A stretch of DNA of 63,899 nucleotides, counting the filler, from Perkinsus chesapeaki ATCC PRA-425 (lineage: Eukaryota > Protista > Perkinsozoa), in assembly GCA_013115145.1 (NCBI GenBank). It is 3 parts of 3 records of this genome, joined end to end, with 100 filler letters (N's around TTAATTAATTAA, not from the genome) between each part and the next. Parts side by side here need not be neighbours in the genome. Positions count along the whole stretch, not along the records: positions 1 to 31,007 come from JAAPAO010000428.1; 2 more parts are not named here. One strand, given 5' to 3'. A program made the translations under genes and the position numbers. How positions within the stretch are numbered: position 1 is the stretch's first letter; every line of letters starts with the position of its first letter. This document shows positions 2,470-31,007 of the stretch, one piece after another. Below the pieces are notes generated by a model that saw nothing but the letters and a program-made list of their open reading frames with translations, did no database searches and was not told the DNA's origin.

Positions 2470-2590
2470 GGGCCCAGCTGATGAAAGAGTACCTGACAGC
2501 GATGTGATCTACTCATTGGGCTCTCTATAGCCCTGATCTGAACCCCATTGAAAATCTATTGGGTGATTTCAAGCGTAGAATTCACTCCGT
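2470..2590 (+). mobile_element. Degenerate Tc1/mariner transposase relic
   Basis: 2517-2585 translates as WALYSPDLNPIENLLGDFKRRI, matching the Tc1 WPxxSPDLNPIExxW..LKRR catalytic-E motif. Upstream sequence has stops and frameshifts, and no TIRs were found. Confidence 0.65.
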
Positions 2591-3245
2591 GATCGGACCA
2601 CGGTAGTCCGAGCTTCAGACTCCGATGGAACAAAGATGAACCGCGAAGCTGCATCTTGGAGGAAAGGAGATCAGCGGCAGTTGAAGAATACCGCATTCTG
2701 ACTTGTTCCGCAGCAGCGACGATTGCGATGAAAAATAGGGTTGCACTACGACTGCAGAACGTGGCCGTTGCAGCAGCATTTCGAGAAGAAACGCTTGAAT
2801 CCGGCCAGGGCTTTCGAGCGACAAGGCATTACAGTGTCCTTTGTGAGCCATACCGCATTGGTGTGATAACATGGGCAAAGCTCTCGAGGAGGCTAAGACA
2901 TTTAATAACCCCTTATGTACTACTAACCATGCCTTCGTAGTCTAGTAGACTGCTGATTAATAATCACTGCCATCGTGTATTTGAGTTGGACATGAGGTTG
3001 GAAGTGATTTCTTATCTACCCAGCTGATTGTGTAGAGCTCGAAATATGTAGCTTGCTGGCCCCGGGGGCGGCTCCATAGTGGAGCCTCCACTAGATAATC
3101 TAGTCTACATTCCCCAGTCTCCTTCTGTGTCGTAATTTCGAAGCATAGGATGAGGTGTATGCTGCTAATGGCGAAAGTGGGTCATCCAACTGGGGTGCAT
3201 GCCGCATGCCAGGAAACGCTTACACATGAGAGAACATCTACTCAG

Positions 3246-4333
3246 GTACACGACTTCGCTGGCTCCTATTTTATATCGGTCGACGAGATGGGCTTTGCTA
3301 GGCCCATGAAGTACATGCATTTGTATCCAAATGCTCAAGAGCAGGATGCCTGGGACACAGCGGTGAGATACAACTATAGCTTTCGGAAATGTCCTGCTGT
3401 CACTCGGTGAGGGTTGGATCTTCGGGTAGCGAATTGCTACTGGTGATAAGGATATACTATAATAGCTGGTGTCGCCTTACGAAGAAGTCACTCATCAGTA
3501 AGCCACCGAGTCGGTTGCACCGATAGTGATAACTACTACTCGAAAACTTCGAGTCGAAATTGTGGCCTCCCTGACATATCTTAAGACATTTTGATAAAAT
3601 GATCATAATGTTATCTAGCTACTAGAACGTTAACACTGACAGACGTTCATGACATGGATTCTTCTCACCAATTGATTGTACTTCGAGACTTCATATCTGC
3701 CATTTCAGCGAATTTCGCGGTTTATTTCCAAGTTTGTTTTTTCGATTCCTCGGTAAGAGCTTCGAAACTTTATAGGAATATGCCAATGAAAAAAGGGTTC
3801 TGAAGTTCATATCCTACTTACATATGTTCACTCCCTTGATCGACAAATTTCACACATCAAATTTACTGAATGTGAAAAAGGCCTCGAGCAGCCTGCTCAT
3901 AGCAGGTGTTAGAGCTGTGAACTTCAGATTCGAGCGGCGGATTCTACTTTCGAAAAGCGAAGTCATAACATCATTTGCAACAACTGTCATCATCACGTAA
4001 GTCATCGTTCCTTACGTTCATCGACTTGTCGTTTTCCGGAAAACATTCCCGTAACAATTGAGATTATGCAGGCGTTGTCAATCCCTTAACAGTTCCGCTA
4101 ATATTAGGTAGTGGAATGCTTGAACGACATGCAATATGGAGGTTCTCGTAAATGGAATCAGGCTACTCTATGTTGGTTACTTCTAATCAATGGATGCTTT
4201 GTGTCCTGGAAAGCAGCGGTAAGCATGCTCTCCTCAGCAAGTACTTGAAGCTGTATTCCAGGTTCAGACATGGGGCCCGTTTGTATTCATCGTCACGTTA
4301 CTATCGGTTATGCCATACTTGAAGCACTTATAA
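3246..4333 (+). CDS. TMEM222: TMEM222/RTE1 (DUF778) family membrane protein, multi-exon, 5' end unresolved
   Basis: GT-AG exons give VHDFAGSYFISVDEMGFARPMKY..AWDTA, HNIICNNCHHH, CLNDMQYGGSRKWNQATLCWLLLINGCFVSW and VQTWGPFVFIVTLL..KHL*. These match the family motifs DFAGPY..AWD.AV, HNL..DNCHSHVA and KTWLPF. Confidence 0.75.
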
Positions 4334-4453
4334 GTTTCGAACACGCACCTGTTTGTCTTGTCAGTGTTAAATTGAAAGCCTTCCACGGTTCGAAATTATA
4401 CATTATTTCTTCAATCCGAATCTGGCAGTTCTCCTTTATTATTATTCTTGTGC

Positions 4454-5926
4454 ATGCGTGCTATTTCTATATATGGAATTCTCATACCAGCTGTTTACTC
4501 TGATAACGAGTTTTGCTTCCAAGATGTTAATATTAATTATCATGCATTTGTCGAATATTCTGGTACTTTAACAAATGATAAATGTTCGCAATGTTATAAA
4601 ATTAATAGAAGTAAATACTACATTGGTGATGCATATAAAAATATAAAAGATGCACCTGAAAGTGTTGGCATATGTTTACCGATAACATGTATGGAATGGC
4701 ACGCTAAATTATTAATTCATCAATTCTATAATACAAATGTAATTGCTTTTATCAACTTGAAAGAAGTTTCAATTGATGATTGCAATGATGATAATAAAGA
4801 TGAGGTTGCTGTTTGTATTGAAGGGCCAATTGGAAGAGCATCTTTAGAAGTGTTGGACTCAATTAGGCAAAACGTTATTCGACCAATGAAAGGGAAAGTC
4901 TTCTTCGTCGGCGATTTCGATAAAAAGTCAAATCGAACAATCGCGGATATTTTACAATTCCTCCGCATCGGTCTCGGTGAGATTGACTCATTTGACATTC
5001 GGGAGGATATTACACGAGATGAAGCTTTGGTAGAATTCATAAATGAAAGTGAAGTTGGTGAAATAATTATCAATCAAGATTGGCTTACTGGAAGGGAAAT
5101 ACTCAATTTAAAAGGAAAACGAAGATGTTTGGAAATAATTGAAAAATGGGAAGAAAATAATTTGATGAAATTTGATTATATTTTCTACACAAGAATTGAT
5201 CTGATGTGGTTGAGTAAACCTCCACCATTAAATGTTTTGAAATATGTTAAAACAAATGATGATATTATATGGATACCCGATAGTGAAGATTGGAGAGGAT
5301 TAAATGATAGAACAGCAATAATGAAAAGGCAACTGGCAAATGTATACTTTTACCGTTATGATGTTTTTATTAATGGTTTAATACTGGATTATTTAAATAA
5401 TATAAATAAGATTAGTTACATTGGAGTTGACGATGATGAAATGTTTAATAAAGTTGATTTAAGTATCAATCCAGAAATAATCCTCAAAATGCATTTATTA
5501 TATAATAAAATAATCATTGGACGTTATCCAACTGTAGCTGCAATTAGAACATGTCAACAAGGACAACAATGTATTGGTAAATCAACCAAATTGAATAATG
5601 GATTTCGATTCATTGCTGAACAATCTGTGGCGCGCGGTAATTCATATCTTATAAATATATTAGGTTGGCGATGGTCAATTGATTCTATCCCTCAATTATC
5701 TCCTCCTTGTTTTCAAACTTATCAAGAATATCAATTTTGTTGTGAAACTGATGCCGCCATTTACGGAAAGACTCTTTGTTATCTCGATGGCAGTTATTCA
5801 TTTCATAGATGTTGTGATAATAAAACAATAACAATTGGTTTATCAAAAGCTCACAAAAGTTACGATAACAATGATTCATGTATTAATGTAATTGGTGATG
5901 TAAAACTTTGTTATTATTTTAAATAA
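4454..5926 (+). CDS. Intronless secreted glycosyltransferase-like protein with Cys-rich N- and C-terminal modules (copy 1)
   Basis: 490-aa ORF from ATG 4454 with a hydrophobic leader MRAISIYGILIPAVYS. Core motifs VAVCIEG..R, FDYIFYTRIDL and WIPDSEDWRGLNDRTAI resemble the AVC.SG..R / D...R.R.D / NDRFA family of GT-A-like proteins. GICLP..C near the N-terminus; C..YQ..Q.CC..C..G.YSF.RCC at the C-terminus. Function is inferred. Confidence 0.8.
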   Translation: MRAISIYGILIPAVYSDNEFCFQDVNINYHAFVEYSGTLTNDKCSQCYKINRSKYYIGDAYKNIKDAPESVGICLPITCMEWHAKLLIHQFYNTNVIAFINLKEVSIDDCNDDNKDEVAVCIEGPIGRASLEVLDSIRQNVIRPMKGKVFFVGDFDKKSNRTIADILQFLRIGLGEIDSFDIREDITRDEALVEFINESEVGEIIINQDWLTGREILNLKGKRRCLEIIEKWEENNLMKFDYIFYTRIDLMWLSKPPPLNVLKYVKTNDDIIWIPDSEDWRGLNDRTAIMKRQLANVYFYRYDVFINGLILDYLNNINKISYIGVDDDEMFNKVDLSINPEIILKMHLLYNKIIIGRYPTVAAIRTCQQGQQCIGKSTKLNNGFRFIAEQSVARGNSYLINILGWRWSIDSIPQLSPPCFQTYQEYQFCCETDAAIYGKTLCYLDGSYSFHRCCDNKTITIGLSKAHKSYDNNDSCINVIGDVKLCYYFK

Positions 5927-6018
5927 ATAAATATTATTTTTATTAATAATTGATAATTAACCATTCTCATCATTTGTTGTTTCATCACTTCACAGCACTC
6001 ATCTGGACAATTCCTTAA

Positions 6019-7691
6019 ATGGCCCATCAACCTCCAAGTGTCATAAAAGATACTTCTAAAGTAACATCAATTATAACCTGATAATAATTTATTAATTTCA
6101 GGTCACCTTCGTTCCATCATCAGCAACTATCATCCCACCTAATGTTTGCTCTTCCATAAATCCGCCATCGATGAGGGAGGTGATTATTAATGTCTACTTA
6201 ACTTGTTATTATTGGTCAAATCAGTTTACTTATAATACTCGACTATCAACTCGTACTTTACCATCGATAACTTCAACTTGGTTACCTCCACAAGAAGTTA
6301 ACTCATTTAAATCATTTCAACAACCAATCGACAATCAGTAATTATCGCATCGACGCTCTTTATCATAATTATTTATTATTTTCAGTCAATCCATTTTCCC
6401 TCCTCTTCCACTCATCAATTCGACGATTCCCTCCCAAAAGGTAAATCATCATAAAACGGCGTCTGGCAGTGATGCTCAATCGATTCCATTTTTCCATTTT
6501 CGTATCATTCAATCGCATCACAGGCCTTCATTAATAATTCCTACTTTGAAACTAGTAGGAGATTATCTAACACATCAAACCAGCAGCAACAACCTCATCA
6601 TCATGATTCGATCAAAACATCAACAATTATAAAACCAAAGATGAACGGAATCGATTATCAACAAGCTGATCTGAAATGGCGTGTAACTGAGACAAGAATG
6701 TTGAGTATGCAAATTGATTTTGGAAAAGGAGAGTTTGAAATAAATGGTAAAACTAGTAAGTATATCTTAAGCATTTCCCCATCATTAATCAGGTATCCCA
6801 CTTTATCTAAATTTAGATCATCCAACTACTCCTGGTGAGACTGGCCTTCGTGTTTGGGATGCTGGAATATGCATGGCGAAGTGATTTAATAACTTTTATG
6901 AAACTCAAACATTCTTTTGGTAGATATTTTGAAACTCATTTGGAAGATATTAAAGATATGAGAAAAGTTGAAAGACTGAAAGTGAGGATATTTTCCCGAC
7001 GTGTGAAGAGATTTAACAGATTCTCGAACTCGGTTGTGGTAGTGGAGTTGTCGGCATTTCTTGTTCATTAACTTCAACACCTTGTGATGTTATATTAACC
7101 GATCGAGCGATTATTAAACCTCGGACTGAATCAAACGTGAGATGATCGTCTCAAACAGAAGTTGAGTGGCAGCTGACCAGATTGATATTAATAAGGAAGC
7201 GATTGCGAAGAGAGGGAATACATGTTGTTATACAGTAAATAAAAGTAAGATACGAATGAATTATCGAATCGATTAGGTGATCGATTGGAAGGACCTAGAT
7301 AACAGCGAGTATGATTGGTCTTCTCCTCCTGATATTATCATAGCAAGTGATGTCCTCTGGTCGCAGGTATTCTTACATTATCATACTTACAAATTTACAC
7401 TTTAATCAGGTATTCGTTAAACCATTCGTTGAGACACTTTTAAAGGCTTCTCCAAATCACACAAATACTCCTGACTTTTATATTTGCCAGAAAAGTCGCA
7501 ATGTGGATTTGGATGCTCTTTGGATTAATGAAGTATCCAAGCATTTCGAGGTCAGCAAACATTAATTCAATTCGATCGCGAAGTTGCCAACTTTAATTTA
7601 TTCTCAGTTGTTGGATGAATGTCGTTCGACGGAAGTCCTTCCTGAAGAATATCATCACGCGAGAATTAACATGTATCATTTTAAAAGGTAA
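6019..7691 (+). CDS. METTL21/Methyltransf_16-family SAM-dependent (lysine) methyltransferase with S/T/P/Q-rich N-terminus (copy 1)
   Basis: Spliced reading from MAHQPPSVIKDTSK (6019) through GETGLRVWDAGICMAK, ILELGCGSGVVGI (motif I, ~7020), VILTD and PDIIIASDVLWSQ to INMYHFKR* (7689-7691). Short GT-AG introns keep the frame open. Confidence 0.85.
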
Positions 7692-8172
7692 CAAAAGTTA
7701 AACAACATTTCATTTATCATAATACTTAGACGATTGAAGGATTGTTGAAGTGTATCCTCATTTGCATGTCTTAATTATTAAATAATAACCATAAAGGTTT
7801 CGAACGATCATATTGAGTGTTGTTGTCTTGAAAGTACACTATTATTGCATCAATCTATCATGGAAATCAAAAACACACAAATGATTCGAAACTAGAACGA
7901 TGGCATGCCACTGAGAGCTATTGAGCGATAAAAGTATAAAGATATGATGCAGTGTCGTACTATAGCTGGGCGGAAAACAGAAGCCTCAATCATCACAGGG
8001 CAAAACGAGCGGTTAAAGAATGATAAAAAATGAAAGATAAGAATGATAATGAAACTTCGTGGCGGACCAGATGCGTATGGTTTGGCGGGTAAAAAGAGGC
8101 ACCTAGGGCCAAACATTGAAGGAACACCATAAAGGTGAAGCTCAGGCAGCTGTAGAGAACACGGGGAGCATA

Positions 8173-9458
8173 TTGTGCGTCCAAATTCGTTAGGCAAATC
8201 CGAAAAAAAGCTATAACTTGACGAGTAAAACGAATTTCAATAAGAAATCAACATATGTTGCGTATTCATGTGGGACAAGTATAACTGTCATGACAAACCA
8301 AATCGATCGCCGTTTCATTGCTCTAGGGCGAGCGAAAAGTCAACTGGCACGTCTTGTTACCGTCCAAATTTGTTGGGCAACTCAACACATTAGGTCTTTG
8401 TACATGAGAAACTTTACTTTATTTCAACTTGCATGCACCCACATACCCTCCCTTACACTGGATGACACGATCTACCCTAGTATCTGCTGACTCGGTCAGT
8501 TTTTTCACCGTCTGGGAGTCAACTGCCTTGAACTCTCGCTTGATCGCTTCCCATAGCTCGTCGGTCGAGTGATACTGGGTCCCGTTGCGATAAAGACCCC
8601 TAAGAATTATTTGTATAGGCTTGGGGACTGGGCGGCTTATAATATTACTGTTTGATTATAGCCCACAAGTGTTCTATAGGATTGAGATCTGGGCTATTCG
8701 GTGGCCACTTCATCAGGCGTGACCCACGGAAGCCCTTCTTCTCCAGAAATGACCGTGTGAAGCTCGAGCTATGTGATGGTGCGTTGTCCTGCATAAGCTT
8801 GAGCTTTCGTTTACGCGCCGTGGCCTGCGATTTATACCAAGGAATGAAATCTTCTTGCAGAATTTTCATGTACCTAAGACTCCTACGTATTGCGCTTTAG
8901 CGAAGCACTTTGACTCACTCTTCCGAGTTGATCTTGACGCCCTTTGGTACCCTAGTGGGGCCTATAATCTCATCGTCAACGATTGCAGCCCATATCATTA
9001 CTCCTCCCCCTCCCTGTTGCCTCTTAAAGCGCCCCGGGACCTCCTTCCCATTGACCACCCACCCCTTTGCCCATCCATCGGGGCCATCGAGTGATGCGCT
9101 CGTTTCATCCGTCCAAATAACGTTTGAAAAGTCCTCTTTTTTGTATGTGCGGGCCCATTCCAGCCTTGCCGCCTTATGTTTCTTGGTCAAGGAGGGCCTC
9201 GCTTCAGGCTTCCGGACCTTTCCTATTTCCTTGAGGACATTGCACCGTGTTGACTTTCCTTATTTGGACGGTAACAAGACGTGCCAGTTGACTTTTCGCT
9301 CGCCCTAGAGCAATGAAACGGCGATCGATTTGGTTTGTCATGACAGTTATCCTTGTCCCACATGAATACGCAACATATGTTGATTTCGTATCGAAACTCG
9401 TTTTATTCGTCAAGTTATAGCTTTTTTTCGGATTTGCCTAACGAATTTGGACGCACAA
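8173..9458 (-). mobile_element. Tc1-like DD37E (TRT-type) DNA transposon, internally deleted, ~197 bp TIRs, TA target duplication
   Basis: TIRs at 8173-8369 and 9262-9458 (ttgtgcgtccaaattcgttaggcaaatccg...), flanked by TA at 8171-8172 and 9459-9460. Encodes a transposase on the minus strand. Confidence 0.95.
8419..9259 (-). CDS. DD37E transposase, 5'-truncated, two spliceosomal introns (8874-8918, 8600-8648)
   Basis: Motifs IWTDETSASLDGPDGWAKGW, RQQGGGGVMIWAAI, QDNAPSH followed by 37 residues to SPDLNPIE, and DELWEAIKREF..KGGY..*. Removing the 45 bp and 49 bp GT-AG introns joins the three ORF pieces in frame (NSEE|YMKIL; IIKQ|GLYRNG). No start codon and most of the N-terminal DNA-binding region is missing. 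Confidence 0.9.
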
Positions 9459-9779
9459 TATATCGAGCAGACTTACCTGAAAGCACGCATAGATGCTTCA
9501 AGCATCATACTTGTAGAGCCAGAGTCGCGAAGGAAAATTTCTCAGTTGAAGCCCGGGCAACTGAGACGTAGAGACCGGGCCTAGGTACAGTAGGAGCAAT
9601 TACAAATGGCCTATCACAGATTATTAGTGAAATGTTCAATTTAAAGTAGCTTGAATCATCTAGTGCGAGTGTTCCCACTCACATTAGCTACGTGATCTAC
9701 ACAGCTGCACGGGTTTTTCCACCCTCAATAAGCCTTGGGTTAGGATTATAAGTGTCCCTGGCGCCATGGCGCCAGCCAG

Positions 9780-10591
9780 AAGCTCCTGTGTTTCTTCTTG
9801 AAGCAAATTCATGCCCGGTCCGGGCGGGAGCCTGTTGTTGTGCAACTGCACAACAATGGAGCCTTAAGCTCAGCTCGACGCTAGTACTGCTACTAATGTA
9901 CTAAGTTAAGATTAGATTTCCAGATTCTTGCCTCACTTTGGTTCCTTGAGTTCCCTGATGGTTAACAGAGCCAACCAGCTCCCTGGGCGCCCCGGCCCTC
10001 CGAGCCTTAGGCTGATAATTAGCGCGACAGTTCGCCTGTTGTGGTTCCTTTAGCCCAAAGTGAGTCACGCAACCACTGATGCGCCATCCACCTCGCGGAC
10101 TTGGCAATCCGGAGACTGGGAAAATAGACAGCAAGGAAGGTACGGACGCGCCGTCCGACGACAACACCACCCGAACTCGGAGATTAGAGATTCCATGAAC
10201 TGTTAGAGAGAATTGAGCTGCAGCAAGTGGCAGGTCCATCACTACCGAGTCCGACTCGGCGAGTCGGTCGTCATTGATCCTATAACACACAGATTGAGCC
10301 AAAATAAGGCTGCTCTCGTATCACAGTCCTTTGAAAGTAGATCCAGAAAGTGTACGCATGCACTGTACGGGTGTCACGGAAAATTAGACAGCAAGAACAA
10401 CTTACAGATGTTGTGGGTCCAGATTGATCCCCTCTTGCTATGTTGCTGATCTCCCCAAAACTTGTTATGTCCCGAAGGATATTACTATATCCTGGAGAGT
10501 TGTCTGATGGATTAAACCTTCGCCATTCCCTGTATAGCTGTCGAGCCCAATATCGACTAATTGCGTAGAGTAGTTGTGTTTGCATACACAT
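9780..10591 (-). other. Broken ORFs, possibly a decayed retroelement ORF1/gag remnant
   Basis: Two offset ORFs (10280-10591, 9901-10302). PRGGWRISGCVTHFG..QANCRANYQ loosely resembles eroded CCHC knuckles. Not diagnostic. Confidence 0.2.
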
Positions 10592-10761
10592 AGATTGCTG
10601 CAGAACTTGTGTGCAGTTAGTGTGCTTATACCTAGTGCCCCAGGGTCGTAGTATTGGTATTCTGGCTCAAGGTCCTTTGTTATGTTACTCTTAGGAGTTC
10701 ATCAACTGATACCACGACACAGATAAACTTAAGGCATTCTCACATCAGGCTTCTCTTTTCA

Positions 10762-11904
10762 ATGGCTAAAAGGGACCCTGCTCTTATCAGTAGATTTACA
10801 AGCTTCTCCGCTGCTTTGCTATTTGTTATTGAGATGATTCACAGGTCACATGCTGGTAACGTTCTCCGTGTGAAAGTGGCGAGTAACTTCATCACAACCA
10901 AAGCGTTCCAAGGCGACATGCTTCATGCCACTGTGGTAGCTGACGGCCAACAAATGGAGGTACTTGTGGACACCGGATCCTCCTACCTTTTTTGGGTATG
11001 GAAAACATATTATGGAGGCGTCATGGGTGTAGGGGCGTGCAACGCTTTGTTCTTTAAGTGCTACGAGTGTCTTCACCCTTGCAAGCCGACGGAGCCGACG
11101 ACTCTCAAATTTGACGGCGGTATCTTTCTTGAGATATTCAAGCATTCTGGTGACGTTACGCTTGGAAACATAGAGCTGATGAATATTGATTTCGGCTTGG
11201 TCAGCTGGTCTAAACCTTCCCCTACAAAACGAAGCTACCCTGGAATACTTGGGCTGCGATATGACATGGATCCTAAGTATCCTGCTTTCTTGAAGCAGCT
11301 TGTCGCTCAAGGAGTTGTTGAAAAGAACGTTTTTGCCTTATACTTGAAGCCGGGTGGATGTTGCACTGGACAGTTCGAAGGGGAACTGCTACTCGGTGGA
11401 GGTGATGCAAAACTTTTTAAAGCCCCTCTTCGGTACGTGAATACAGTCGGTGAAGACGAGTGGTTAGTAGGGCTGAGTTTGGTTCAGATCGAAGCCGAGA
11501 GCCTTGTTGTTAACGGTCGTGTTATCCTTGATACTGGATGCAATAATATACTCATTCCACAACAAGAACTGGACAACTTTATTGAGAAAATATCCAAGGC
11601 AGCGAGCGAGTCGGCCGGAGGTGAAGTTATCGTTGAATACGATGACGTGGAAAAAGTATGGGCATTTGACTGCGACTATCTTGCGGACATGCCGACCTTG
11701 TACTTCATGTTATCCGCTCCAACTGGTGACGTCCCCCTCACTATGAACTATGAGAGTTATGTTGGGATGGTAAACTACTACTGTTACCTTAATGTAGAGG
11801 AATCTAGAAGCGACGATTGGAGCTTACCACATTTCATGTTAGTTGGCAATTACGTAGAGTTTCAGCTGGACAATAAGCGGGTCGGCATAGCTAGACTCAA
11901 GTAG
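10762..11904 (+). CDS. Pepsin-family (A1) aspartic protease, intronless, probably secreted
   Basis: Two catalytic motifs VLVDTGSS and VILDTGCN, flap-region GILGL, VFALYL..GELLLGG and C-terminal YVEFQLDNKRVGIA. Hydrophobic leader; ATG 10762 is in frame with the track ORF. Confidence 0.95.
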   Translation: MAKRDPALISRFTSFSAALLFVIEMIHRSHAGNVLRVKVASNFITTKAFQGDMLHATVVADGQQMEVLVDTGSSYLFWVWKTYYGGVMGVGACNALFFKCYECLHPCKPTEPTTLKFDGGIFLEIFKHSGDVTLGNIELMNIDFGLVSWSKPSPTKRSYPGILGLRYDMDPKYPAFLKQLVAQGVVEKNVFALYLKPGGCCTGQFEGELLLGGGDAKLFKAPLRYVNTVGEDEWLVGLSLVQIEAESLVVNGRVILDTGCNNILIPQQELDNFIEKISKAASESAGGEVIVEYDDVEKVWAFDCDYLADMPTLYFMLSAPTGDVPLTMNYESYVGMVNYYCYLNVEESRSDDWSLPHFMLVGNYVEFQLDNKRVGIARLK

Positions 11905-12568
11905 TGGTTGCCAGTCACCGCTGATACAACCGGTAAACTGACTACTAGTCAATTAGTATCTAGTACTGTATCATGGGTACCATCATTTTACAACTATGTA
12001 AATCTTTCAGTACAAGTCAGTGCTTGTCTATCCCGAAGTGCCAATCGTGGTACATGCATAAGTTGGCTAGATCAACCTGGCGGCGCCAAATCATTATAAA
12101 ATGAAAGACCCGCGGAAGTCTGTCGAGTGCTTTCGGAAAGAGAGGCGGATAGACATTACGGGTGGAGTGTCTTCTCTTGGGCGCCACTACATCGCCATCG
12201 CCTTGTGCAGAGACTCAAGCAGAATGGTTGAATTTATCAGAACGTAATAGTTGTTGCTTAGGAAGCGACTCATTGCTAATAATGGGTTCGACCCGGAATC
12301 GAGACGATACCTTATAGACTTTAACAGCGGTTTGACCTCGAAAGGTGTTCCATCATCTCATAAGATTTGTATCAATCGAAGGCTCATTCCGCCTGGTCTC
12401 ACTTGGCAGAAGATCAACGAACGAGTTTGATCTCGCCCGCCGTATGCGATGCATCATTCCTCCACAGCGATCACACGTCTGGTGATCGGCGGAAGTATGT
12501 TACACTTAATCAACACTAAACACTTGAGCTATATCAACATGTGAACATCGACAATTGAACTGTTGTTG

Positions 12569-14371
12569 TTAAGTTGAAGTTGAGTTATCTTTAGCAACAT
12601 GAAAATTGCCGGATAGTTTATTATACCAAATCATGCCTGTCGGACTCTTCGGGTGTTGTAGCTTCACCCACTGACCGTTAAAAGCCGACTCGGCGTCACC
12701 GGCAGCCTGTACAGCAGCCTCTACGGAAGGACGGCGAACCTGGAGGCACGTAGCAGAGTCGATATTCATAATCAGCATCATCCTCCTACGCTTTGGTAGA
12801 CATCCTTAACAATGAGCGGAGGCGCCTTAGCTTCAGCTAGCATCTCACTTAGTTTATTAAATCCATTATCAGCAGCTATTTGATTCGTTGTTCGATTGCT
12901 CTCAGAAATGACTCTGAATTGAGCTCTATTCAGAGGTTATCGATATAGTCACTCACTGGATGGTAGGGTCAGCTTCTTGCTCCAACAGTAATTCACAGAC
13001 ATCCTGATGGCCTCTCGACGCCGCCATCGTTAACGCTGTGTGACCCCAGCTATTCTTCAAATTCACATACCTTTAAAATAACAAATAACAGATATAGTCC
13101 ACGAATGCACCAACGGCTACGTGCGTATTCGTTTCCTTTCGACATGACGTAATAATGTGTTTACAGTCTTAGCGTTGCCGAAGTAGCTGGCTATATGCAG
13201 GGGCGTGTCCTTGTATGTTGGTGTTGGTTTCTGTGATATGTTGCTCATAGCATTATGGCAAAGTATACACGGTGCTTACAGTGACATCTGCTTTGTACCG
13301 AACTAAAGCATCGATCACTTCAACCACTTTACGATGACCTTTATTCTTCTTGATGGCAGCTGCAACATGGAGGGCTGTAACCTAACAATTGATGGTCTTC
13401 ACTGAGTTAACAGCAACTCGGAGTTGCCAACTCCCCCTTGCCTGCGATGCTCCCTTGTTCGGCGAATGTGAATAGCCAGCGCGTGTGTCGAGATCAACTC
13501 GAACGGCAGGGCCCAGAGAGCTTGGATCAGCCCTGGCCTCGAGAAGGCCCCGAACCTGGTGATGCCTACGACTTGAAAAAATCGACCTAGGCATCCCACC
13601 GCATCAACTTGCAGCTTTTCCGTCGCCGCGATAAGCTCGAAGGAATGGAATGAAGCTGAGATGGATGAAAATAGATTAGCAAGTAACACTGGTGTTTTAC
13701 TTCCGGTCGCCTGCTCCACGTAGTTGACCAATTCGAGCTGTCTAACGGCTTTACTGTATGGTGAGAGTTGAAGTTCATAAGCAGCAGCAAGTCGATCCTC
13801 CGCTGGTACCCCTCCGAGGGCCTGGTGCTGATGTCCTGGCGAGCTGCTTAAAGGTGAACTGAATAATAGCAGCGAGTGAAGCTACTAGGCAATGTTATCC
13901 TTACTAAAGGACCAAAGCTTGCTGTTCATGCTCAACATCATCGTCCTCATCATCACTCGCATTCTTGTCAACCTAGCGACCACTACTGAGATCGCCGACA
14001 CAAAAACTGTCCCCACCAATGCGAGTGTAGTTATATCTTCCTTATCATCCATAATAGCTAAGGGCATCGGCGATACCTTCTTGGGCATCGACTTCACTTC
14101 TTCCTCTAACAACCCTGAGCCAGCTACTGTCACCACTGCCAGCAGCATCACATCTCTTTACCCAAAGTGCCGACCATACAGTCCTCTTCGATCTGCCCAG
14201 CCAATGCCTCTACAAACGCAGGGTCGCACTTGGGCGGGTGACCGTAGACGACTTTCCGAGCAATCTGCAGAGAACTAACCGAGCCGTCGAAAGTGGTGTT
14301 TTTACGTCAGGATCGAGTGGCTCCTTTTCACCATTTAGCGCGGCGAGGGACTTCTTCAGTGAAGCACCCAT
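12569..14371 (-). CDS. Ankyrin-repeat protein, multi-exon
   Basis: Exons encode LLEARADP, VTALHVAA..LVRYKADV, DTPLHIASYFGNAKTVNTLL and GHTALTMAASRGHQDVCELLLEQEADP. Likely start MGASLKKS at 14371. Last exon has WVKLQHPKSPTGMIWYNKLSG. Ends approximate. Confidence 0.75.
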
Positions 14372-14567
14372 CTCGAACGCTACAGTTGCTGGTGACGTAC
14401 CCAACTACTCTTGACAACACAAAACTAATATTAGCGATGACATGACAACATCATAACCATTATCATGAAGACAAATGGGTAAGGAGGCTCGAAGCCCAAG
14501 GAAGCATGCCCAAGACAATGGTGGTGATAATGATTATTATGATACAGTAGAATGCCTCTAAGGCACT

Positions 14568-17313
14568 CTACAGATAGGCTGGCTTCCCGTTACTGCCGCC
14601 CAGCATCTTGTTATTCCCTCCACTGCCGCTGCCGGAGCTTCTGGCAGATGACAACAATAGCGACGATGACCTTGCGGAACTGAAGTGTCCCATCGTTCGA
14701 CTGAGTGCGGTAGGGCCTCCTAAATGAGCGGCAGGGTAGAGGGCTCCCCGAGCGCTCTGTTGCCCGATAACCGCTGCAAAATCGCGCCTTCGACCAGGAC
14801 TGTTGATGTGTGATGGTAGTGCGGCTCGAGCGCTGTTCCTAGCTGGCCCTCCTCCTCCTCGCCCGGGGGCGCCATAACTGAGAGAGTGGTGCCTAGGTTA
14901 TGCATATATGGACTCACAAGGTAGCATGTGTTGGGTATCTTCCGTTGTACTGACTACGATGCTTTCTGACACCTTCCGAACATGGGGAAGCATGTGAAGA
15001 TGGTGAAGGAAGTAAAGTAAGAGATGGATGATGAGGATTATGGTGTTGCTGATCCTGTCCATAAAGAGATGGTGATACCTAAGAGTTAGAATTATAACCG
15101 ATCAATATAGTAGTATCTTACCTCGGAGAATGAATGATCTATATGAGCTTGCTCATTCATACCATGTGAACGCTGGGCAGCGCCCTGTATAGGCGGTAAG
15201 CGAGTTGTCGACATTGACTGATGCTGCCAACTGTCCACCATCCGCCGATCTTCATGTCGAGCAAAGCCGCTCATTGACGTGACACCAGCGGCTTGTAGTG
15301 CCCGTTGTGGCGGTTGGGCATATTGAGGCAACGATCCACCACCGTAGATGGCACGCGCCGCCCTGGATGAGATAACATTTCAGTTTGCTCACGCCCCCCG
15401 CCGCAGCTGCTGCTGCTGCTTACCCTTGTTGTTGCCTATGTTGAACCTTGCGAACATTTTTTGAAGATAGATGATGATGTTGCTGTTTTGTGGGAACATC
15501 ACACATCTAATAAAAGATGCCACTCAATGACTTTCCCTCAATTGCCCTACCTTATCGATAGATGGTTCTGGTGAGCCTCCAGTAGTGACTGTGGTTGATA
15601 CTGTCATACCTACCCTCCAACTCTACAACCCTTCAATTAATCACATACACTTACTTCCTTCGGTGTCGCTCGGGTACGGTGGTGATCGTACAGCACTCGT
15701 TGATGAAGTCGACGCGGGTGTTAGACCTGACAGCGTCGGTATCGGCCCTCGAGCCATCGTTATGCTTGTAACTACCGTGATGGGTTTGACGGAAAGCATC
15801 GAAATAGGGCAGTCGCATCGCCTAAAAAATAGATTAATGATTCTCGGGCACCACGAGTTGAAGCAGCAGCAGCATCATCACCTCAGTTGCACTGGGTCGA
15901 TATTCGGCATCATATGTTAATAATATTTTAATAGTGTCAATCGCTTCCTCGGAGACTTTACATTTATGCAGCCATATGTCGATATCTGATCGTTAACAGT
16001 TCATCGGCCTTCCTCAATGAAATAGGAGGTACTATTCCCCAGTAGTCTACCGTCGTATATTAACTGTAAGATTCTGAAGCTTAGTTACAAAGTACAGTAA
16101 AGTGTGCTGAATATGTCCAAATCGATCAACCGTTTCATTCCTTGGCAGCAAGATACCGACGCGCGAAGTTTATGAATCTATTGCGGTGATATGGCCAAGT
16201 GCACCTACTTCTGCCTTTATTATCAGACACAGTTCTTTCCATTTCTCTCAGTGGCCGGTTGCCTTTGCCACTTTTCGACTTGCAATGTTTCTTGAAATGT
16301 TCAAGCAGATCTTGAGAAGGTAGTCCCATGACCTGATAGCATCGGATGCAACTGTACCCTCCAGGCGACCATTATTCTCACTTTGTGTATCTTGTTGACC
16401 TGATCTATCTCGTTCTTCCCTGGAAAAAGCGGCACAAGTGCCAAGACTTCAAAGAAAACACAGCCAATTCTGAAGGAGATTGATAATAGACTCGGGTTCT
16501 ATCCCCAGTAGAGGCAGTTTTACGCCCAAATATCCATCCCAGTGGAATAGTATCCATCAGTTAGCATGCACTCAGGTGCTCTGTACCACCGTGTCGATAT
16601 GTATTCGGTAAATGGCTGCTTCCCGTCGATTCCTGATGCCATCTTTGATTGTCTTTACTGACATATTTGTTACTTTTGCAACTGCCAAGGTCTGCTAACT
16701 TCAAAGTTTCATTTTGATACAGTAATAGATTCTCTGGTTTAATGTCCCTGTATATTAAACATAATCTAACTTCCCTGTATAAATCTTTACCTATGAAATA
16801 TCCCTTTGCCATGAAGGTATTCAACTGCATATAGTAGTTGCCACATCCAGTGGCCTACCCTTTCTTCGGGAATATAATGCCTGCTCAATAAATCCCTCAA
16901 TTCTTTATTGTTTTGTTACTTCCGGCCTTTAATAGCTTCATAAACGTTCATATCCATGAGCTCTAAAACTAACGCTAAGTTCCCTGTATTGGCATCGTAG
17001 AGAACGTCTAGAAGCTTCACTATATTTGGATGCTCTAAAAGATTCTTATAAGGTTAACAACAGGCCTCTCGCTTAATATGCAAAGTTACCTGTTAGTTGT
17101 CTGAGGGCACGTATTTCATGGAAGGAGTTCACTGCATCCATGGAAGTGAATTTACTCTTCATGTACTTAATAGCGACCTAATTAGTATCTTTCAGTTTCG
17201 TTGATTCGCTCGGCTTTGTTGTTTACTTGTCTATTGCTGCTTATATGTCGCCCGAGGAGGACCTCTGAGAAGGTCCCTTCACCCTTTTTACCGAGTAATC
17301 TGTATTGGTTCAT
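14568..17313 (-). CDS. MOK: MOK/RAGE-like (RCK/MAPK superfamily) Ser/Thr kinase with low-complexity C-terminal tail
   Basis: MNQYRLLGKKGEGTFSEVL, VAIKYMK, HPNIVKLLDVLYD..TGNLALVLELMDMNVYE, YRDIKPENLL, KLADLGSC, KQPFTEYISTRWYRAPEC and LFPGKNEIDQVNKIH. The tail reads in frame across introns to a TAG at 14568-14570. Confidence 0.9.
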
Positions 17314-18125
17314 TAATGCCGAAATATCGAGGTTTAATGTAGAGTAAAACAGAACAACATCTGCAACAACAGGTAAGGTCAATTTAAGGAAGGAAAATTG
17401 CGAACTTGCGCAAAATGCGCGGATATGATCTGAGCGTTGAGGAAATGTAAGAACGAGCAAGTGAGCAAGAAGTGTATAGAGGGATGTACGCGATGCTCGT
17501 TTTGCTGGTTTGGCGCAGTAAACATGTCAATCGTGACTTTATGATCTTATCTACTTCCCATGACGACCATAGTGCTGTCCTACACTTTAGAACCTACTAT
17601 GACTTGATTAGTTGTGCGATACTATCATCAATCATTATGCACGCATGCGCATATTAGCTATAAAATCAATCGTAATTATCATACGTAATCTGACTAAAAC
17701 AGGCACAGGCAAAGTCAAAGCTGATCGGAGTTGGTATAATCTATCGTTAAGATACGATGTAGCAGTGCCTTCAGCCGAATCGGATATGGAAATATGAGAT
17801 CCTCGCGCCAGGAAACGTGAGGTTGTTGTAGGATTCTGCGCAGTCTATGTGCATGCGTGCTAGAATAATCTATAGCTAAGGGGCCGGCGCGGTTGGTTAT
17901 TTCGCCTACCCTTGGTGTGTTCTTGGTTATCACTCCTATCCCTAGCGTAAGCTAACTATCCCTCAAGGTCCCTCCTGTTGTGTTAACGCATCTGAGCCTC
18001 TAGTCCCACATCAACTAACTAGTTAACCGAACCCGATAACAAGGTTCATTCCTGAAGGACTCAACCTTAGCTCAATACCACAGCTGATCATCACTCTAAA
18101 ACTACTGTTAAACTTATCAGCAACT

Positions 18126-18290
18126 ATGCGTCTTATCTACTCTATTGTAGCTCTAATCGCCATCTTTAAAGAAGCCAACGCACAAAGCTTCAACAATTGT
18201 GGAGGCCGTACTTGCCCACCAGGCCACTACTGTCGTTGTGCTCCTGTGGGGCGCACTGGCTGCAGATACACTTGCGAAAGGAATCCGTAA
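18126..18290 (+). CDS. Small secreted cysteine-rich peptide (54 aa, 6 Cys)
   Basis: MRLIYSIVALIAIFKEANA-QSFNNCGGRTCPPGHYCRCAPVGRTGCRYTCERNP*. Clear signal peptide with A-N-A cleavage site. Below the 60-aa ORF-track cut-off. Confidence 0.7.
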   Translation: MRLIYSIVALIAIFKEANAQSFNNCGGRTCPPGHYCRCAPVGRTGCRYTCERNP

Positions 18291-19677
18291 TATCTTTCCA
18301 ACTCATGCTTATCATTCATGGTGGTCATCATTACCTCTATCAAAAGCTCCTGGTAATTGTAATACAGGCAAGCTATAAGATATGCCATCGTTAATGATGA
18401 TACTATTTGTCCGAGTCGTCAATGGTTCACACCCTCTCAGTTATCGACCATAGCTGGCTTCTCGTTAACTACTACATACTACGCTCATGCGCCTCAGTAT
18501 TACCCACTAAGTTAACTGTTCTGGTCAACAAACAGATTCTGTTTCGAGTCCCATATATCCTTTTGCGTTTATTAAGTGTCACGAGCAATCAACACTGAGT
18601 CCAGAAAAAGATCAACCAACTGTCATCACTGATGCTGTCCAGTTTCCCGCACATAGGTGAGCACTAACTGTGTTGTTACTTCTAGTGATATGTAGCCTAC
18701 TCGAAACGCCAACTCCTACTATCACGAGGCTTAATGAGTGCTGCCAGTCGATGTTGATCGAACTTGTGCTTTGGTACCTTCTGTTTTTGAGTGACAACAA
18801 CTCCTGATGACAACTCAGTGCGTTTGTACAACTCCTTGCCAAGGTGCCATGGGGTGCACGATTTGAGCTAACGTGAAGTTACTTCAAACTGAACAACTTT
18901 TCAATTCTCATCTATGACTGTCCATTCTTGATTGCTCCCACTGTAGCCTCGGCCGTACTCTACCTCTCATCTGACCGAGCATAACCTCAGCATCAAATAA
19001 GGCACCTTGTTTCATAACTCGAGTCTTCCAAGTATCTGTGCATGCCTTCGCAGAGGGCCCTTCGGTTGAGTTTGCCTTGATATCCGCGCTTCCCTACAGC
19101 TGCCTGAGCTTCACCTTCAATGTTTGGCCCTAGGCGCCTCTGCCACCCGCCAAACTATACGCATCTGGTCCGCCACGATGTTTCTATCGTTGTCCGTTCT
19201 ATTCAAGTCGACGCGCCACTCGAGCATCTCCTTGAGAATGCCTATTTATCTGTCGTACCATTGACTCTAATGCCCACATGGGGGATTTATGTATGGGTTG
19301 CGTTGCAGCCGCCGTGGTGTACCAGTTTTCCTCGCTCGACGCTGTTTCTACTTCAACCGCTCGTTTTGCTCTGTGATGGTTGAGGCTTCTGTTTTCCGCC
19401 CAGCTATAGTACGGCACTGCATCATATCTTTATACTTTTATCGCTCAATAGCTCTCAGTGGCATGCCATTGTTCTAGTTTCGAATCATTTGTGTGTTTTT
19501 GATTTCCATGATAGATTGACGCAATAATAGTTTACTTTCAAGACAACAACACTCAATATGATCGTTCGAAACCTCTATTGTTATTATTTAATAATTAAGA
19601 CATGCAAATGAGGATACACTTCAACAATCCTTCAATCGTCTAATTATTATGATAAATGAAATGTTGTTTAACTTTTG

Positions 19678-21359
19678 TTACCTTTTAAAATGATACATGT
19701 TAATTCTCGCGTGATGATATTCTTCAGGAAGGACTTCCGTCGAACGACATTCATCCAACAACTGAGAATAAATTAAAGCTGGCAACTTCGCGATCGAATT
19801 GAATTAATGTTTGATGACCTCGAAATGCTTGGATACTTCATTAATCCAAAGAGCATCCAAATCCACATTTCGACTTTTCTGGCAAATATAAAAGTCAGGA
19901 GTATTTGTGTGATTTGGAGAAGCCTTTAAAAGTGTCTCAACGAATGGTTTAACAAATACCTGATTGAAGTGTAAATTTGTAAGTATGATAATGTAAGGAT
20001 ACCTGCGACCAGAGCACATCACTTGCTATGATAATATCAGGAGGAGAAGACCAATCATACTCGCTGTTATCTAGATCCTTCCAATCCATCACCTGATCGA
20101 TTTGATAACACAATCGTATCTTACTTTTCTTTACTTTATAACAACATGTATTCCCTCTCTTCGCAATCGCTTCCTTATTAATATCAATCTGGTCAGCTGC
20201 CACTCAACTTCTGTTTAAGACGATCATCTCACGTTTGATTCAGTCCGAGGTTTAATAATCGCTCGATCGGTTAATATAACATCACAAGGTGTTGAAGTTA
20301 ATGAACAAGAAATGCCGACAACTCCACTACCACAACCGAGTTCGAGAATCTGTTAAATCTCTTCACACGTCGGGAAAATATCCTCACTTTCAGTCTTTCA
20401 ACCTTTCTCATATTTTTGATATCTTCCAAATGAGTTTCAAAATATCTACCAAAAGAATGTTTGAGTTTCATAAAAGTTATTAAATCACTTCGCCATGCAT
20501 ATTCCAGCATCCCAAACACGAAGGCCAGTCTCACCAGGAGTAGTTGGATGATCTAAATTTAGATAAAGTGGGATACCTGATTAATGATGGGGAAATGCTT
20601 AAGATATACTTATTAGTTTTACCATTTATTTCAAACTCTCCTTTTCCAAAATCAATTTGCATACTCAACATTCTTGTCTCAGTTACACGCCATTTCAAAT
20701 CAGCTTGTTGATAATCGATTCCGTTCATCTTTGGTTTTATAATTGTTGATGTTTTGATCGAATCATGATGATGAGGTTGTTGCTGCTGGTTTGATGTGTT
20801 AGATAATCTCCTACTAGTTTCAAAGTAGGAATTATTAATGAAGGCCTGTGATGCGATTGAATGATACGAAAATGGAAAAATGGAATCGATTGAGCATCAC
20901 TGCCAGACGCCGTTTTATGATGATTTACCTTTTGGGATGGAATCGTCGAATTGATGAGTGGAAGAGGAGCGAAAATGGATTGACTGAAAATAATAAATAA
21001 TTATGATAAAGAGCGTCGATGCGATAATTACTGATTGTCGATTGGTTGTTGAAATGGTTTAAATAAGTTAACTTCTTGTGGAGGTAACCAAGTTGAAGTT
21101 ATCGATGGTAAAGTACGAGTTGATAAACGAGTATTATAAGTAAACTGATTTGACCAATAATAACAAGTTAAGTAGACATTAATAATCACCTCCCTCATCG
21201 ATGGCGGATTTATGAAAGAACAAACATTAGGTGGGATGATAGTTGCTGATGATGATGATGATGGAACGAAGGTGACCTGAAATTAATAAATTATTATCAG
21301 GTTATAATTGATGTTACTTTAGAAGTATCTTCTATGACACTTGGAGGTTGATGGGTCAT
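19678..21359 (-). CDS. METTL21-family methyltransferase (copy 2)
   Basis: Same exon chain as 6019-7691 (MTHQPPSVIEDTSK...ELGCGSG...DIIIASDVLW...HFKR*). The coding indel seen is in frame. Confidence 0.85.
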
Positions 21360-21451
21360 TTAAGGAATTGTCCAGATGAATGCTGTGAAGTGATGAAACA
21401 ACAAATGATGAGAATGGTTAATTATCAATTATTAATAAAAATAATATTTAT

Positions 21452-22924
21452 TTATTTAAAATAATAACAAAGTTTTACATCACCAATTACATTAATACAT
21501 GAATCATTGTTATCGTAACTTTTGTGAGCTTTTGATAAACCAATTGTTATTGTTTTATTATCACAACATCTATGAAATGAATAACTGCCATCGAGATAAC
21601 AAAGAGTCTTTCCGTAAATGGCGGCATCAGTTTCACAACAAAATTGATATTCTTGATAAGTTTGAAAACAAGGAGGAGATAATTGAGGGATAGAATCAAT
21701 TGACCATCGCCAACCTAATATATTTATAAGATATGAATTACCGCGCGCCACAGATTGTTCAGCAATAAATCGAAATCCATTATTCAATTTGGTTGATTTA
21801 CCAATACATTGTTGTCCTTGTTGACATGTTCTAATTGCAGCTACAGTTGGATAACGTCCAATGGTTATTTTATTATATAATAAATGCATTTTGAGGACTA
21901 TTTCTGGATTGATACTTAAATCAACTTTATTAAACATCTCCTCATCGTCAACTCCAATATAATTAATCTTATTTATATTATCTAAATAATCCATTATTAA
22001 ACCATTAATAAAAACATCATAACGGTAAAAGTATACACTTGCCAGTTGCCTTTTCATTATTGCTGTTCTATCATTCAATCCTCTCCAATCTTCACTATCG
22101 GGTATCCATATAATATCATCATTTGTTTTAACATATTTCAAAACATTTAATGGTGGAGGTTTACTCAACCACATCAGATCAACTCTTGTGTAGAAAATAT
22201 AATCAAATTTCATCAAATTATTTTCTTCCCATTTTTCAATTATTTCCAAACATCTTCGTTTTCCTTTTAAATTGAGTATTTCCCTTCCAGTGAACCAATC
22301 TTGATTGGTAATTATTTCACCAACTTCACTTTCATTTATGAATTCTACCAAAGCTTCATCTCGTGTAATATCCTCCCGAGTGTCAAATGAGTCAATCTCA
22401 CCGAGACCGATGCGGAGGGATTGTAAAATATCCGTGATTGTTCGATTTGACTTTTTATCAAAATCGCCGACGAAGAAGACTTTCCCTTTCATTGGTCGAA
22501 TAACGTTTTGCCTAATTGAGTCCAACACTTCTAAAATTGCTCTTCCAATTGGTCCTTCAATACAAACAGCAACCTCATCTTTATTATCATCATTGCAATC
22601 ATCAATTGAAACTTCCTTTAAGTTGATAAAAGCAATTACATTTGTATTATAGAATTGATGAATTAATAATTTAGCGTGCCATTCCATACATGTTATCGGT
22701 AAACATATGCCAACCCTTTCAGGTGCATCTTTTATATTTTTATATGCATCACCAATGTAATATTTACTTCTATTAATTCTATAACATTGCGAGCATTTAT
22801 CATTTGTTAAAGTACCAGAATATTCGACAAATGCATGATAATTAATATTAACATCTTGGAAGCAAAACTCGTTATCAGAGTAAACTGCTAGTATTAGTAA
22901 TCCATAAACAGAAATGGCACGCAT
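21452..22924 (-). CDS. Intronless secreted glycosyltransferase-like protein (copy 2)
   Basis: Same length as copy 1, with 19 amino-acid differences counted by eye. Leader MRAISVYGLLILAVYS. Confidence 0.8.
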   Translation of the reverse strand: MRAISVYGLLILAVYSDNEFCFQDVNINYHAFVEYSGTLTNDKCSQCYRINRSKYYIGDAYKNIKDAPERVGICLPITCMEWHAKLLIHQFYNTNVIAFINLKEVSIDDCNDDNKDEVAVCIEGPIGRAILEVLDSIRQNVIRPMKGKVFFVGDFDKKSNRTITDILQSLRIGLGEIDSFDTREDITRDEALVEFINESEVGEIITNQDWFTGREILNLKGKRRCLEIIEKWEENNLMKFDYIFYTRVDLMWLSKPPPLNVLKYVKTNDDIIWIPDSEDWRGLNDRTAIMKRQLASVYFYRYDVFINGLIMDYLDNINKINYIGVDDEEMFNKVDLSINPEIVLKMHLLYNKITIGRYPTVAAIRTCQQGQQCIGKSTKLNNGFRFIAEQSVARGNSYLINILGWRWSIDSIPQLSPPCFQTYQEYQFCCETDAAIYGKTLCYLDGSYSFHRCCDNKTITIGLSKAHKSYDNNDSCINVIGDVKLCYYFK

Positions 22925-23191
22925 GCACAAGAATAATAATAGAGGAGAACTGTCAGATTCGGATTGAAGAAATACTGTACAATTCCGAACCGTGGAAGGC
23001 TTTCAATTTAACACTGACAAGGGAAACAGATGCAGGCAGTTGTGTCGAGTAAGGGTGTGAGCAATACGCCAACGCGGAGGTAAGACATGAAGTGATTGAC
23101 CAGCTTAACAAGACACTTTTCATTAAAGCACACAAACAACGGAAAACACCAAGGAGTGTTCTGAAATATACAATGATAAAAAATCGTAATA

Positions 23192-30898: not shown

Positions 30899-31007
30899 TT
30901 TATATATTATTTTTATATCATTACATTTATACAGTATTTTCATATCATTACATTTATATATTATTTTTATATCATTACATTTATATATTATTTTTATATC
31001 ATTACAT
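30899..31007. repeat. 27 bp AT-rich minisatellite, 4 copies, running into the contig end
   Basis: Unit tttatatattatttttatatcattaca; the second copy carries substitutions. Confidence 0.9.

Follow-up and report, generated by a model that had tools for sequence, protein, structure and literature searches.

A small inverted duplication of a DUF7796 and Methyltransf_16 gene pair in Perkinsus chesapeaki, with a core probably homogenised by arm-to-arm gene conversion

The palindromes of the primate Y and X chromosomes bear genes and undergo gene conversion from arm to arm. A far smaller structure of this kind was found in DNA of the protist Perkinsus chesapeaki ATCC PRA-425, a parasite of clams (assembly GCA_013115145.1), where two inverted arms, each with a DUF7796 gene (gene A) and a Methyltransf_16 methyltransferase gene (gene B), enclose a spacer. 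The window, that is, the whole stretch that was analysed, comprises 63,899 nucleotides in three joined parts, filler included, and the inverted repeat lies in the first of them, a complete contig of 31,007 bp (JAAPAO010000428.1; C2869 in our numbering). As in the primate palindromes, inverted arms with genes that look intact surround a unique spacer, non-coding DNA is homogenised along with the genes, and the arms are much more alike than is to be expected from the age of their duplication. The locus differs from them in its smaller scale, by a factor of about a thousand (its arms measure 3.7 kb, theirs tens of kilobases to megabases), in its identity of 97.4% in place of more than 99.9%, in being a single protist locus known from one assembly, and in the AT-richness of its arms, where GC-biased conversion would predict enrichment in GC. 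It belongs to a known kind of structure, small palindromes that carry genes and evolve in concert, and represents neither a mobile element nor a new system. No publication on such structures in Perkinsus was found. Little has been described of how nuclear genomes change in Perkinsozoa, and the locus offers a clean, small case from this group of an inverted gene pair in concerted evolution; as a curiosity of genome architecture it is modest, and it leaves the understanding of the parasite unchanged.

Repeat search and all-against-all blastn of the contig revealed one large inverted repeat (4345-8018 against 23033-19351), whose arms of 3674 and 3683 nt are separated by a gap of 11,332 nt and carry genes that point inward. 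In a base-by-base comparison the arms differed by 87 substitutions (62 transitions and 25 transversions), and the only indel, of 9 bp, was at position 6115. Both arms are internal to the contig, and their outer flanks are not homologous to each other as judged by blastn and by comparison of the junctions. The structure is a true inverted duplication of a two-gene unit. An earlier reading of the same DNA, made from the sequence alone (the sequence-only reading), had given arm coordinates, arm size, spacer size, inward orientation and AT-richness that all proved correct by repeat search, blastn and measurement of GC content. It had also proposed a genome-wide count of copies; in a search of the whole P. 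chesapeaki assembly (41.7 Mb, 3544 contigs) the arm sequence was present in two copies only. Inspection of the outer arm junctions detected neither terminal repeats nor a target-site duplication and no recombinase was found, in line with the same reading, the sole transposase nearby belonging to a dead Tc1/mariner element that is a later arrival. An Rfam scan of the window returned no match to a non-coding RNA.

Homology between the two sides goes on inward for about 400 bp past the arms at 67-81% identity, after a short stretch that differs between them (an indel, 19185-19350). Positions 8051-8159 match 19184-19090 at 81%, and 9551-9652 match 18980-18876 at about 72%. Once the Tc1/mariner element is removed, the left side from 8041 to 9716 aligns continuously with the right side from 19191 to 18812 at 67% identity including gaps, with an alignment score of 268 against a maximum of 67 among shuffled sequences. 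This homology of the tails is co-linear, adjoins the arms, keeps the same inverted orientation and is unique in the genome. The unit that was duplicated consequently had a length of about 4.1 kb; in its tail, which is under no constraint, the copies now differ by 19-33%. The possibility that the spacer as a whole is a larger decayed palindrome was discarded, as blastn and tblastx showed no homology beyond about 9716 on the left and 18812 on the right.

The Tc1/mariner element that divides the left tail has terminal inverted repeats of 200 bp, 97.5% alike, with TA on both flanks. Its transposase matches DDE_3 at 43.2 bits, above the cut-off, and HTH_Tnp_Tc3_2 at 27.9 bits, below the cut-off of 31.5 bits, and is split over at least three frames, so that the element is dead. 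Copies or solo copies of the terminal repeat were detected on more than ten other contigs at 65-98% identity (C3068, C1261, C2861, C3091, C2295, C47, C2914, C822 and others). Terminal inverted repeats of 200 bp are unusually long for a Tc1/mariner element. Since the right copy keeps the empty target site, the transposon was inserted after the duplication, and the decayed tails together with the later transposon indicate that the duplication is old.

The core of the arms presents another picture, with a divergence of 2.5% in introns, 1.1% in the intergenic stretch and 5.3% at synonymous sites. Because the introns are about 97% identical, selection cannot account for the identity of the core. 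Moreover, the core, non-coding DNA included, is far more alike than the tails duplicated along with it, and it was therefore homogenised after the duplication: introns at 97.5% and intergenic DNA at 98.9% identity stand far above the adjacent tails at 67-81%, which is the pattern by which conversion from arm to arm is recognised. The differences are unevenly spread along the arms, with nine of them falling within 60 nt around intron 8 (P = 0.002) and one run of 386 nt identical between the arms (P = 0.005), and divergence climbs to 7.8% in the outermost 103 nt. On this sequence evidence, arm-to-arm gene conversion is most likely the homogenising process.

Comparison with Perkinsus olseni indicates which of the two copies came first. 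The P. olseni protein P0002 (FOZ63_030691) consists of an RTE1-like (PF05608) N-terminus joined to a DUF7796 protein, and P0001 (FOZ63_010405) of a DUF7796 protein joined to a Methyltransf_16 domain; by tblastn the two map co-linearly onto positions 1414-7550. The RTE1 exons (1414-4245, plus strand; tblastn, Pfam-confirmed) adjoin the left arm only, and the other two parts match both arms. Whether the joined models stand for fusions or for merged neighbours, the order of RTE1, DUF7796 and methyltransferase is, judged from these alignments, the ancestral one. RTE1 lies beside the left arm only and P. olseni shows this ancestral order, which makes the left copy the ancestral one and the right copy the derived one; neither this polarity nor the decayed inner tails had been noticed in the sequence-only reading. 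The DUF7796 and methyltransferase genes have stayed linked in two species with a protein identity of only about 50%. A lack of such linkage in relatives would, according to the sequence-only reading, have reduced the locus to an ordinary one-off duplication; in the P. olseni models the two genes are linked. In P. chesapeaki a TAA stop separates DUF7796 from the methyltransferase, and the joined P. olseni models are probably merged neighbours, with a true fusion in that species as the alternative. The two P. olseni DUF7796 sequences share 90% identity, and P. olseni may also carry two DUF7796 copies, or else two divergent haplotypes.

At a probability of roughly 70%, we consider the locus to be an old, lineage-specific inverted segmental duplication, in the nuclear genome, of an ancestral gene pair, the core of which was later homogenised by arm-to-arm gene conversion. 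The ancestral neighbours, DUF7796 and Methyltransf_16, would have been copied together with about 0.4 kb of downstream DNA, and the derived right copy would have been placed head-in and inverted some 9 kb downstream. The non-genic inner tails would then have drifted, with Tc1/mariner landing in the left one, while repeated ectopic gene conversion between the arms has most likely kept the gene-bearing core of 3.67 kb alike, as in a small palindrome under concerted evolution. The net result would be two functional copies of each gene, and the same pairing of arms could invert the spacer by crossover. The likeliest consequence, as predicted from the sequence, is just two expressed copies of each gene, and a benefit of dosage may go with it.

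Several points weigh against this account. Conversion is deduced from two sequences, between which the changes are unpolarised, and a second, more recent re-duplication that overwrote the first would give the same pattern. Upstream of gene A, the sequence common to the two copies is limited to about 100 bp. The synteny with P. olseni is drawn from merged gene models and not from inspected DNA, and the physical reality of both arms, as well as the orientation of the spacer, depends on the contig of a single assembly. Finally, the match of the homogenised core to a sharp block of 33% GC is left without explanation.

One recent event of inverted duplication, with an age of about 2.6% divergence and no conversion, would agree with the coarsely uniform similarity of the arms and with the young local duplications seen elsewhere in the genome; the similarity of the tails would then have to be unrelated or the product of fast unconstrained decay. 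We regard this as unlikely, because the tails are co-linear, adjoin the arms, share their inverted orientation and occur nowhere else in the genome, because their divergence is about ten times that of the core introns and intergenic stretch, for which a lack of constraint is insufficient, and because the differences within the core are significantly clustered. Perkinsus genomes have been reported to be polyploid and heterozygous (Bogema et al. 2020, as cited in PMC8062965), and a divergence of 2.6% is within the plausible allelic range, so the assembly might have joined two divergent haplotypes and shown one locus twice in inverted orientation. Such a mis-join would leave allelic flanks, whereas the arms are internal, have differing, non-homologous outer flanks and enclose a unique gene-bearing spacer of about 9 kb; inner tails at 67-81% identity and a difference of one 1.3-kb transposon are, in addition, far beyond allelic variation. 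An assembly artefact is accordingly very improbable.

The sequence-only reading had offered a mobile or recombinogenic unit as one of its two options. That the AT-rich block of 3.7 kb is a mobile or foreign cassette inserted twice, for example one derived from a giant virus, appears very unlikely, even though the arms are sharp-edged compositional outliers, gene A is intronless and a protein cluster rich in Nucleocytoviricota (79% of members) carries PF25072 in 17% of its members. The left copy stands in a gene order common to P. olseni, the methyltransferase gene has 11 short introns of host type, and, among the relatives of gene A outside Perkinsus whose source is known, the nearest belong to the sister lineage, the dinoflagellates. 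Furthermore, there are two copies only, lacking terminal repeats, a target-site duplication and a recombinase, and other AT-rich regions of the assembly (contig C36, described below) carry single-copy housekeeping genes with short introns. The mobile part of the option thus fell on copy number, on the missing target-site duplication and recombinase and on the ancestral gene order, and its recombinogenic part was partly borne out by the evidence for exchange between the arms. With their length of 3.7 kb and identity of 97%, the inverted arms offer a good substrate for recombination, and gene conversion of the kind proposed implies that they pair; flipping of the spacer is mechanistically plausible, given this evidence of exchange. 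An invertible switch, in which crossovers between the arms flip the spacer with its secreted protease, six-Cys peptide and kinase, both orientations coexist and regulation is affected, is nevertheless decidedly unlikely, as the assembly contains one orientation only, no site-specific recombinase lies nearby, and whole genes are located inside the spacer, so that a flip would not obviously alter the relations between promoters and genes. An old duplication with a probably converted core is the reading that we retain.

The composition of the arms poses a puzzle of its own. Their GC content is 33.5-33.6%, compared with 44.6% in the left flank, 46.4% in the spacer and 45.2% in the right flank; five other large contigs, sampled over 200 kb, had a mean of 48.2%, and their 1-kb windows had a standard deviation of 3% and a lowest value of 36.9%. 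The low GC content is confined to the homogenised core, whose four edges it matches to within 100-200 bp, and does not reach into the older tails. GC at third codon positions is 0.21 in gene A against 0.49 in the spacer protease, and the ratio of FYMINK to GARP residues is 2.25 in gene A against 0.80 in its P. olseni orthologue. The P. olseni orthologues are not AT-shifted, and the shift is therefore lineage-specific. Among the 87 differences between the arms, 75 set A or T against G or C. Decay driven by methylation or resembling repeat-induced point mutation was rejected as a cause, since the dinucleotide ratios in the arms (TpA/ApT 0.66, (CpA+TpG)/(ApC+GpT) 1.43, observed to expected CpG 0.94-0.98) bear no signature of either repeat-induced point mutation or deamination.

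AT-rich DNA is also present elsewhere in the assembly. On contig C36, positions 40001-76264, at least 36 kb has a GC content of 21-36%, apart from one 1-kb window at 42%, and its housekeeping genes, among them one for an EH-domain protein and a P5A-ATPase in single copy, have short introns of Perkinsus type and low-complexity inserts rich in Asn and Ile. As C36 is AT-rich and holds ordinary genes, the assembly has large AT-rich compartments beside its bulk at 48% GC. It is unlikely to be a contaminant or a homeologous subgenome, as its P5A-ATPase is the sole close copy in the genome and its introns are short and of Perkinsus type.

A survey of 244 kb sampled from other contigs revealed four local duplications (C2295, C3015, C2904 and C1402), or about one per 60 kb, all of them direct. 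The three older ones, on C2295, C3015 and C1402, comprise 1.0-3.1 kb at 80-87% identity, lie 2-6 kb apart and are normal in GC. The fourth is a direct repeat of 411 bp (C2904:20522-20932 and 26152-26562), 98% identical and with 31% GC in a context of 50%. The repeat on C2904 contains a gene fragment with the HAD-like motif DMDGT and tiny introns, and weak, decayed homology continues downstream of it. The arms resemble these ordinary local duplications in being copies on the kilobase scale a few kilobases apart; they differ in being inverted where the other four are direct, and only the C2904 pair shares both the identity of about 98% and the GC content of about 31%. AT-rich islands are not two-copy duplicates in general, as the island C520:8151-9075 holds a short dispersed repeat (C520:8200-8415, about 200 bp). 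This repeat is AT-rich, resembles a miniature inverted-repeat transposable element and occurs in at least 15 copies on other contigs at 70-87% identity. Ectopic conversion between young paralogues might be AT-biased, or converted tracts might escape the force that holds the genome at 48% GC, either of which would give sharply bounded AT-rich islands; we put this forward as a quite doubtful idea built on two cases, the arms and C2904, and not as a rule. For holders of the whole genome and the reads, the match between AT-richness and homogenised core is a cheap lead.

The protein of gene A, the open reading frame (ORF) of which is uninterrupted over 490 codons in both arms, begins with the hydrophobic stretch MRAISIYGILIPAVYS, which by eye resembles a signal peptide or signal anchor, and has Cys-rich N- and C-terminal parts around a GT-A core at about residues 113-484. 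It matches Pfam DUF7796 (PF25072) at 27.8 bits in the left and 29.0 bits in the right copy, a narrow margin over the gathering threshold of 27 bits; 39 of 46 aligned relatives also match the family, with a best E-value of 5e-16. Close homologues are limited to three P. olseni proteins, of which the two full-length ones are 48% identical. A HMMER search of 1.84 billion representative sequences returned 253 relatives, the best named ones being from dinoflagellates (Polykrikos, Prorocentrum/Polarella) and a green alga, and in the ESM Atlas a cluster with PF25072 in 17% of its members consists to 79% of Nucleocytoviricota (giant viruses). Searched by sequence, the Protein Data Bank (PDB) gave no match to gene A, and a literature search on DUF7796 found no publication. 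Neither exact look-up nor similarity search detected the proteins of the two copies in a collection of 15 billion proteins, and no protein of P. chesapeaki or P. marinus was among the homologues in either length range; both DUF7796 gene copies may be missing from, or differently modelled in, the public P. chesapeaki annotation.

Structure prediction gave this uncharacterised family a fold. The AlphaFold2 model of gene A, built from the alignment of its relatives, has a mean predicted local distance difference test score of 76.8, with most of the core (about 113-490) above 85. In a Foldseek search of the PDB the top 50 matches to the model were all GT-A enzymes (E 3e-6 to 6e-5). VIA-align superposed the predicted core (about residues 105-484) on POMGnT1, GnT-I, Kre2/Mnt1, COLGALT1, hyaluronan synthase and alpha-1,3-GalT with Z of 10-11.5 and root-mean-square deviations of 3.8-5.0 A over 207-258 residues. 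The modelling thus supports a confident prediction of a GT-A glycosyltransferase fold with a Rossmann-like core, and "glycosyltransferase-like", as the sequence-only reading had called the product, holds at the level of the fold. Gene A shares with GT-A enzymes such as GnT-I, POMGnT1, Kre2/Mnt1, COLGALT1 and the GT6 alpha-1,3-GalT the core fold and a hydrophobic N-terminus, but its sequence identity to them is 6-14%, it has additional Cys-rich modules at both ends, Pfam files its family as DUF7796, and an invariant R-x-D occupies the place where the canonical DxD is expected. The canonical DxD after strand beta-4 is absent, and R247-I-D249 follows the strand 242-247; across the relatives this site has R in 45 of 45 and D or E in 44 of 45. 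A second conserved block (P275..D279..G282..N284-D285-R286) places the acidic D279 and D285 in the loop after R-x-D. The protein is probably of secretory type; its sequence has the typical features of a GT-A enzyme, luminal or secreted, that carries Cys-rich modules. A widespread uncharacterised family hence gains a predicted GT-A fold with an unusual R-x-D replacing DxD.

Gene B was modelled with eleven GT-AG introns of 38-83 nt, and its exons were scanned and translated singly and not as a joined protein. The exon at 7020-7136 alone matches Methyltransf_16 (PF10294) at 31 bits against a cut-off of 21 bits, and in a six-frame scan of the genome one arm scored 39.3 bits and the other 38.8 bits, which bears out the label of methyltransferase assigned from the bare sequence. 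Gene B resembles METTL21D/VCP-KMT and other Methyltransf_16 enzymes in this Pfam match, in the S-adenosylmethionine (SAM)-binding motif I GxGxG (LELGCGSGVVG) and in the motif DIIIASDVLW. It differs from them in a long, poorly conserved N-terminal extension of about 200 amino acids, rich in Ser, His and Thr, and in its position just past a secretory glycosyltransferase-like gene, with 92 nt from the stop of gene A to the proposed ATG (previously estimated at about 90 bp). The first four exons (to about 6640) are of low complexity and not conserved with P. olseni, and the start codon is putative. For the orthologous part of P. olseni P0001 the closest solved structure is 7oas, an unnamed protein of the SAM-dependent methyltransferase superfamily, followed by METTL21D/VCP-KMT, EEF2KMT and METTL21B. 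These features support the prediction of a cytosolic-type protein-lysine methyltransferase of METTL21 type, without a signal sequence. No other member of the aligned DUF7796 relatives carries a methyltransferase domain, and genes A and B probably share no pathway, to judge from their predicted products.

Comparison of the copies agrees with the earlier view that all four genes are intact. None of the 19 residue differences between the gene A copies falls on a family-invariant column, and R247, D249, P275, D279, G282, D285 and R286 are kept in both; the ratio of nonsynonymous to synonymous differences (pN/pS) between them is 0.33. In gene B all 12 exons are open and all GT/AG splice sites are kept in both arms, and the 9-bp indel, likewise recognised before as an in-frame coding change, lies in exon 2 and adds Ser-Ser-Ser to the right copy. 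As far as can be told at this level, all four genes look intact and are predicted to be functional. The features of the locus are collected in Table 1.

Table 1. Coordinates of the inverted repeat, its genes and the neighbouring features (positions in the window)
Feature	Position	Strand	Description	Evidence
Left arm, high-identity core	4345-8018	+	Ancestral copy; 33.5% GC	Repeat search, blastn, RTE1 directly upstream as in P. olseni
Right arm, high-identity core	19351-23033	-	Derived inverted copy; 33.6% GC	Repeat search, blastn
Gene A, left copy	4454-5926 (ORF opens 4448/4454)	+	Intronless; 490-amino-acid DUF7796 protein	ORF, Pfam, fold model
Gene A, right copy	21452-22924 (ORF opens 22924/22930)	-	19 amino-acid differences from left copy	ORF, alignment
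Gene B, left copy	6019-7748	+	Methyltransf_16 (METTL21-like lysine methyltransferase); 12-exon model, with putative, poorly conserved 5' exons (6019-6440)	Exon model, Pfam
Gene B, right copy	19621-21359	-	Methyltransf_16; 9 amino-acid substitutions and Ser-Ser-Ser insertion	Exon model, Pfam
Left decayed tail, part 1	8041-8172	+	81% identical to 19184-19090	blastn, alignment
Left decayed tail, part 2	9461-9716	+	About 65-72% identical to 18990-18812	Alignment
Right decayed tail	18812-19191	-	Continuous over empty Tc1/mariner site	Alignment
Tc1/mariner element	8173-9460	-	Broken; 1.29 kb; inside left tail	Pfam, terminal inverted repeats, TA flanks
RTE1-like (PF05608) gene	1501-4245	+	Upstream neighbour of left arm; synteny anchor	tblastn, Pfam
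Unique spacer	9717-18811		About 9.1 kb	blastn, tblastx
Aspartic protease	10765-11904	+	Intronless ORF	Pfam Asp, 115 bits
Protein kinase exons	about 16564-17526	-		Frame scan
Short six-Cys ORF	18126-18290	+	Signal-like N-terminus, six Cys; MRLIYSIVALIAIFKEANA...	ORF reading; no Pfam match

Inside the repeat, the ORF of the spacer protease is 100% identical to P. chesapeaki FOL47_007306, and the six-Cys ORF adjoins the inner side of the right decayed tail. The protease, the kinase, the six-Cys ORF and the transposon (the Tc1/mariner remnant) had all been named in the sequence-only reading; a scan of 20 frames did not detect the ankyrin protein that it placed beside them.

Upstream of the left arm, the first two RTE1 exons are about 1.6 kb apart (1626-3234), a distance far above that of the nearby introns of 38-83 nt, and two short palindromes are located within this gap at 2087-2149 and 2180-2206; the gap may represent an insertion or an unrecognised gene. 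At the other end of the contig, a 55-bp tandem repeat (95% identity) at 30898-31007 runs into the contig end, with 36% GC over the last kilobase, and the repeat together with the low GC probably explains why the assembly stopped at 31007.

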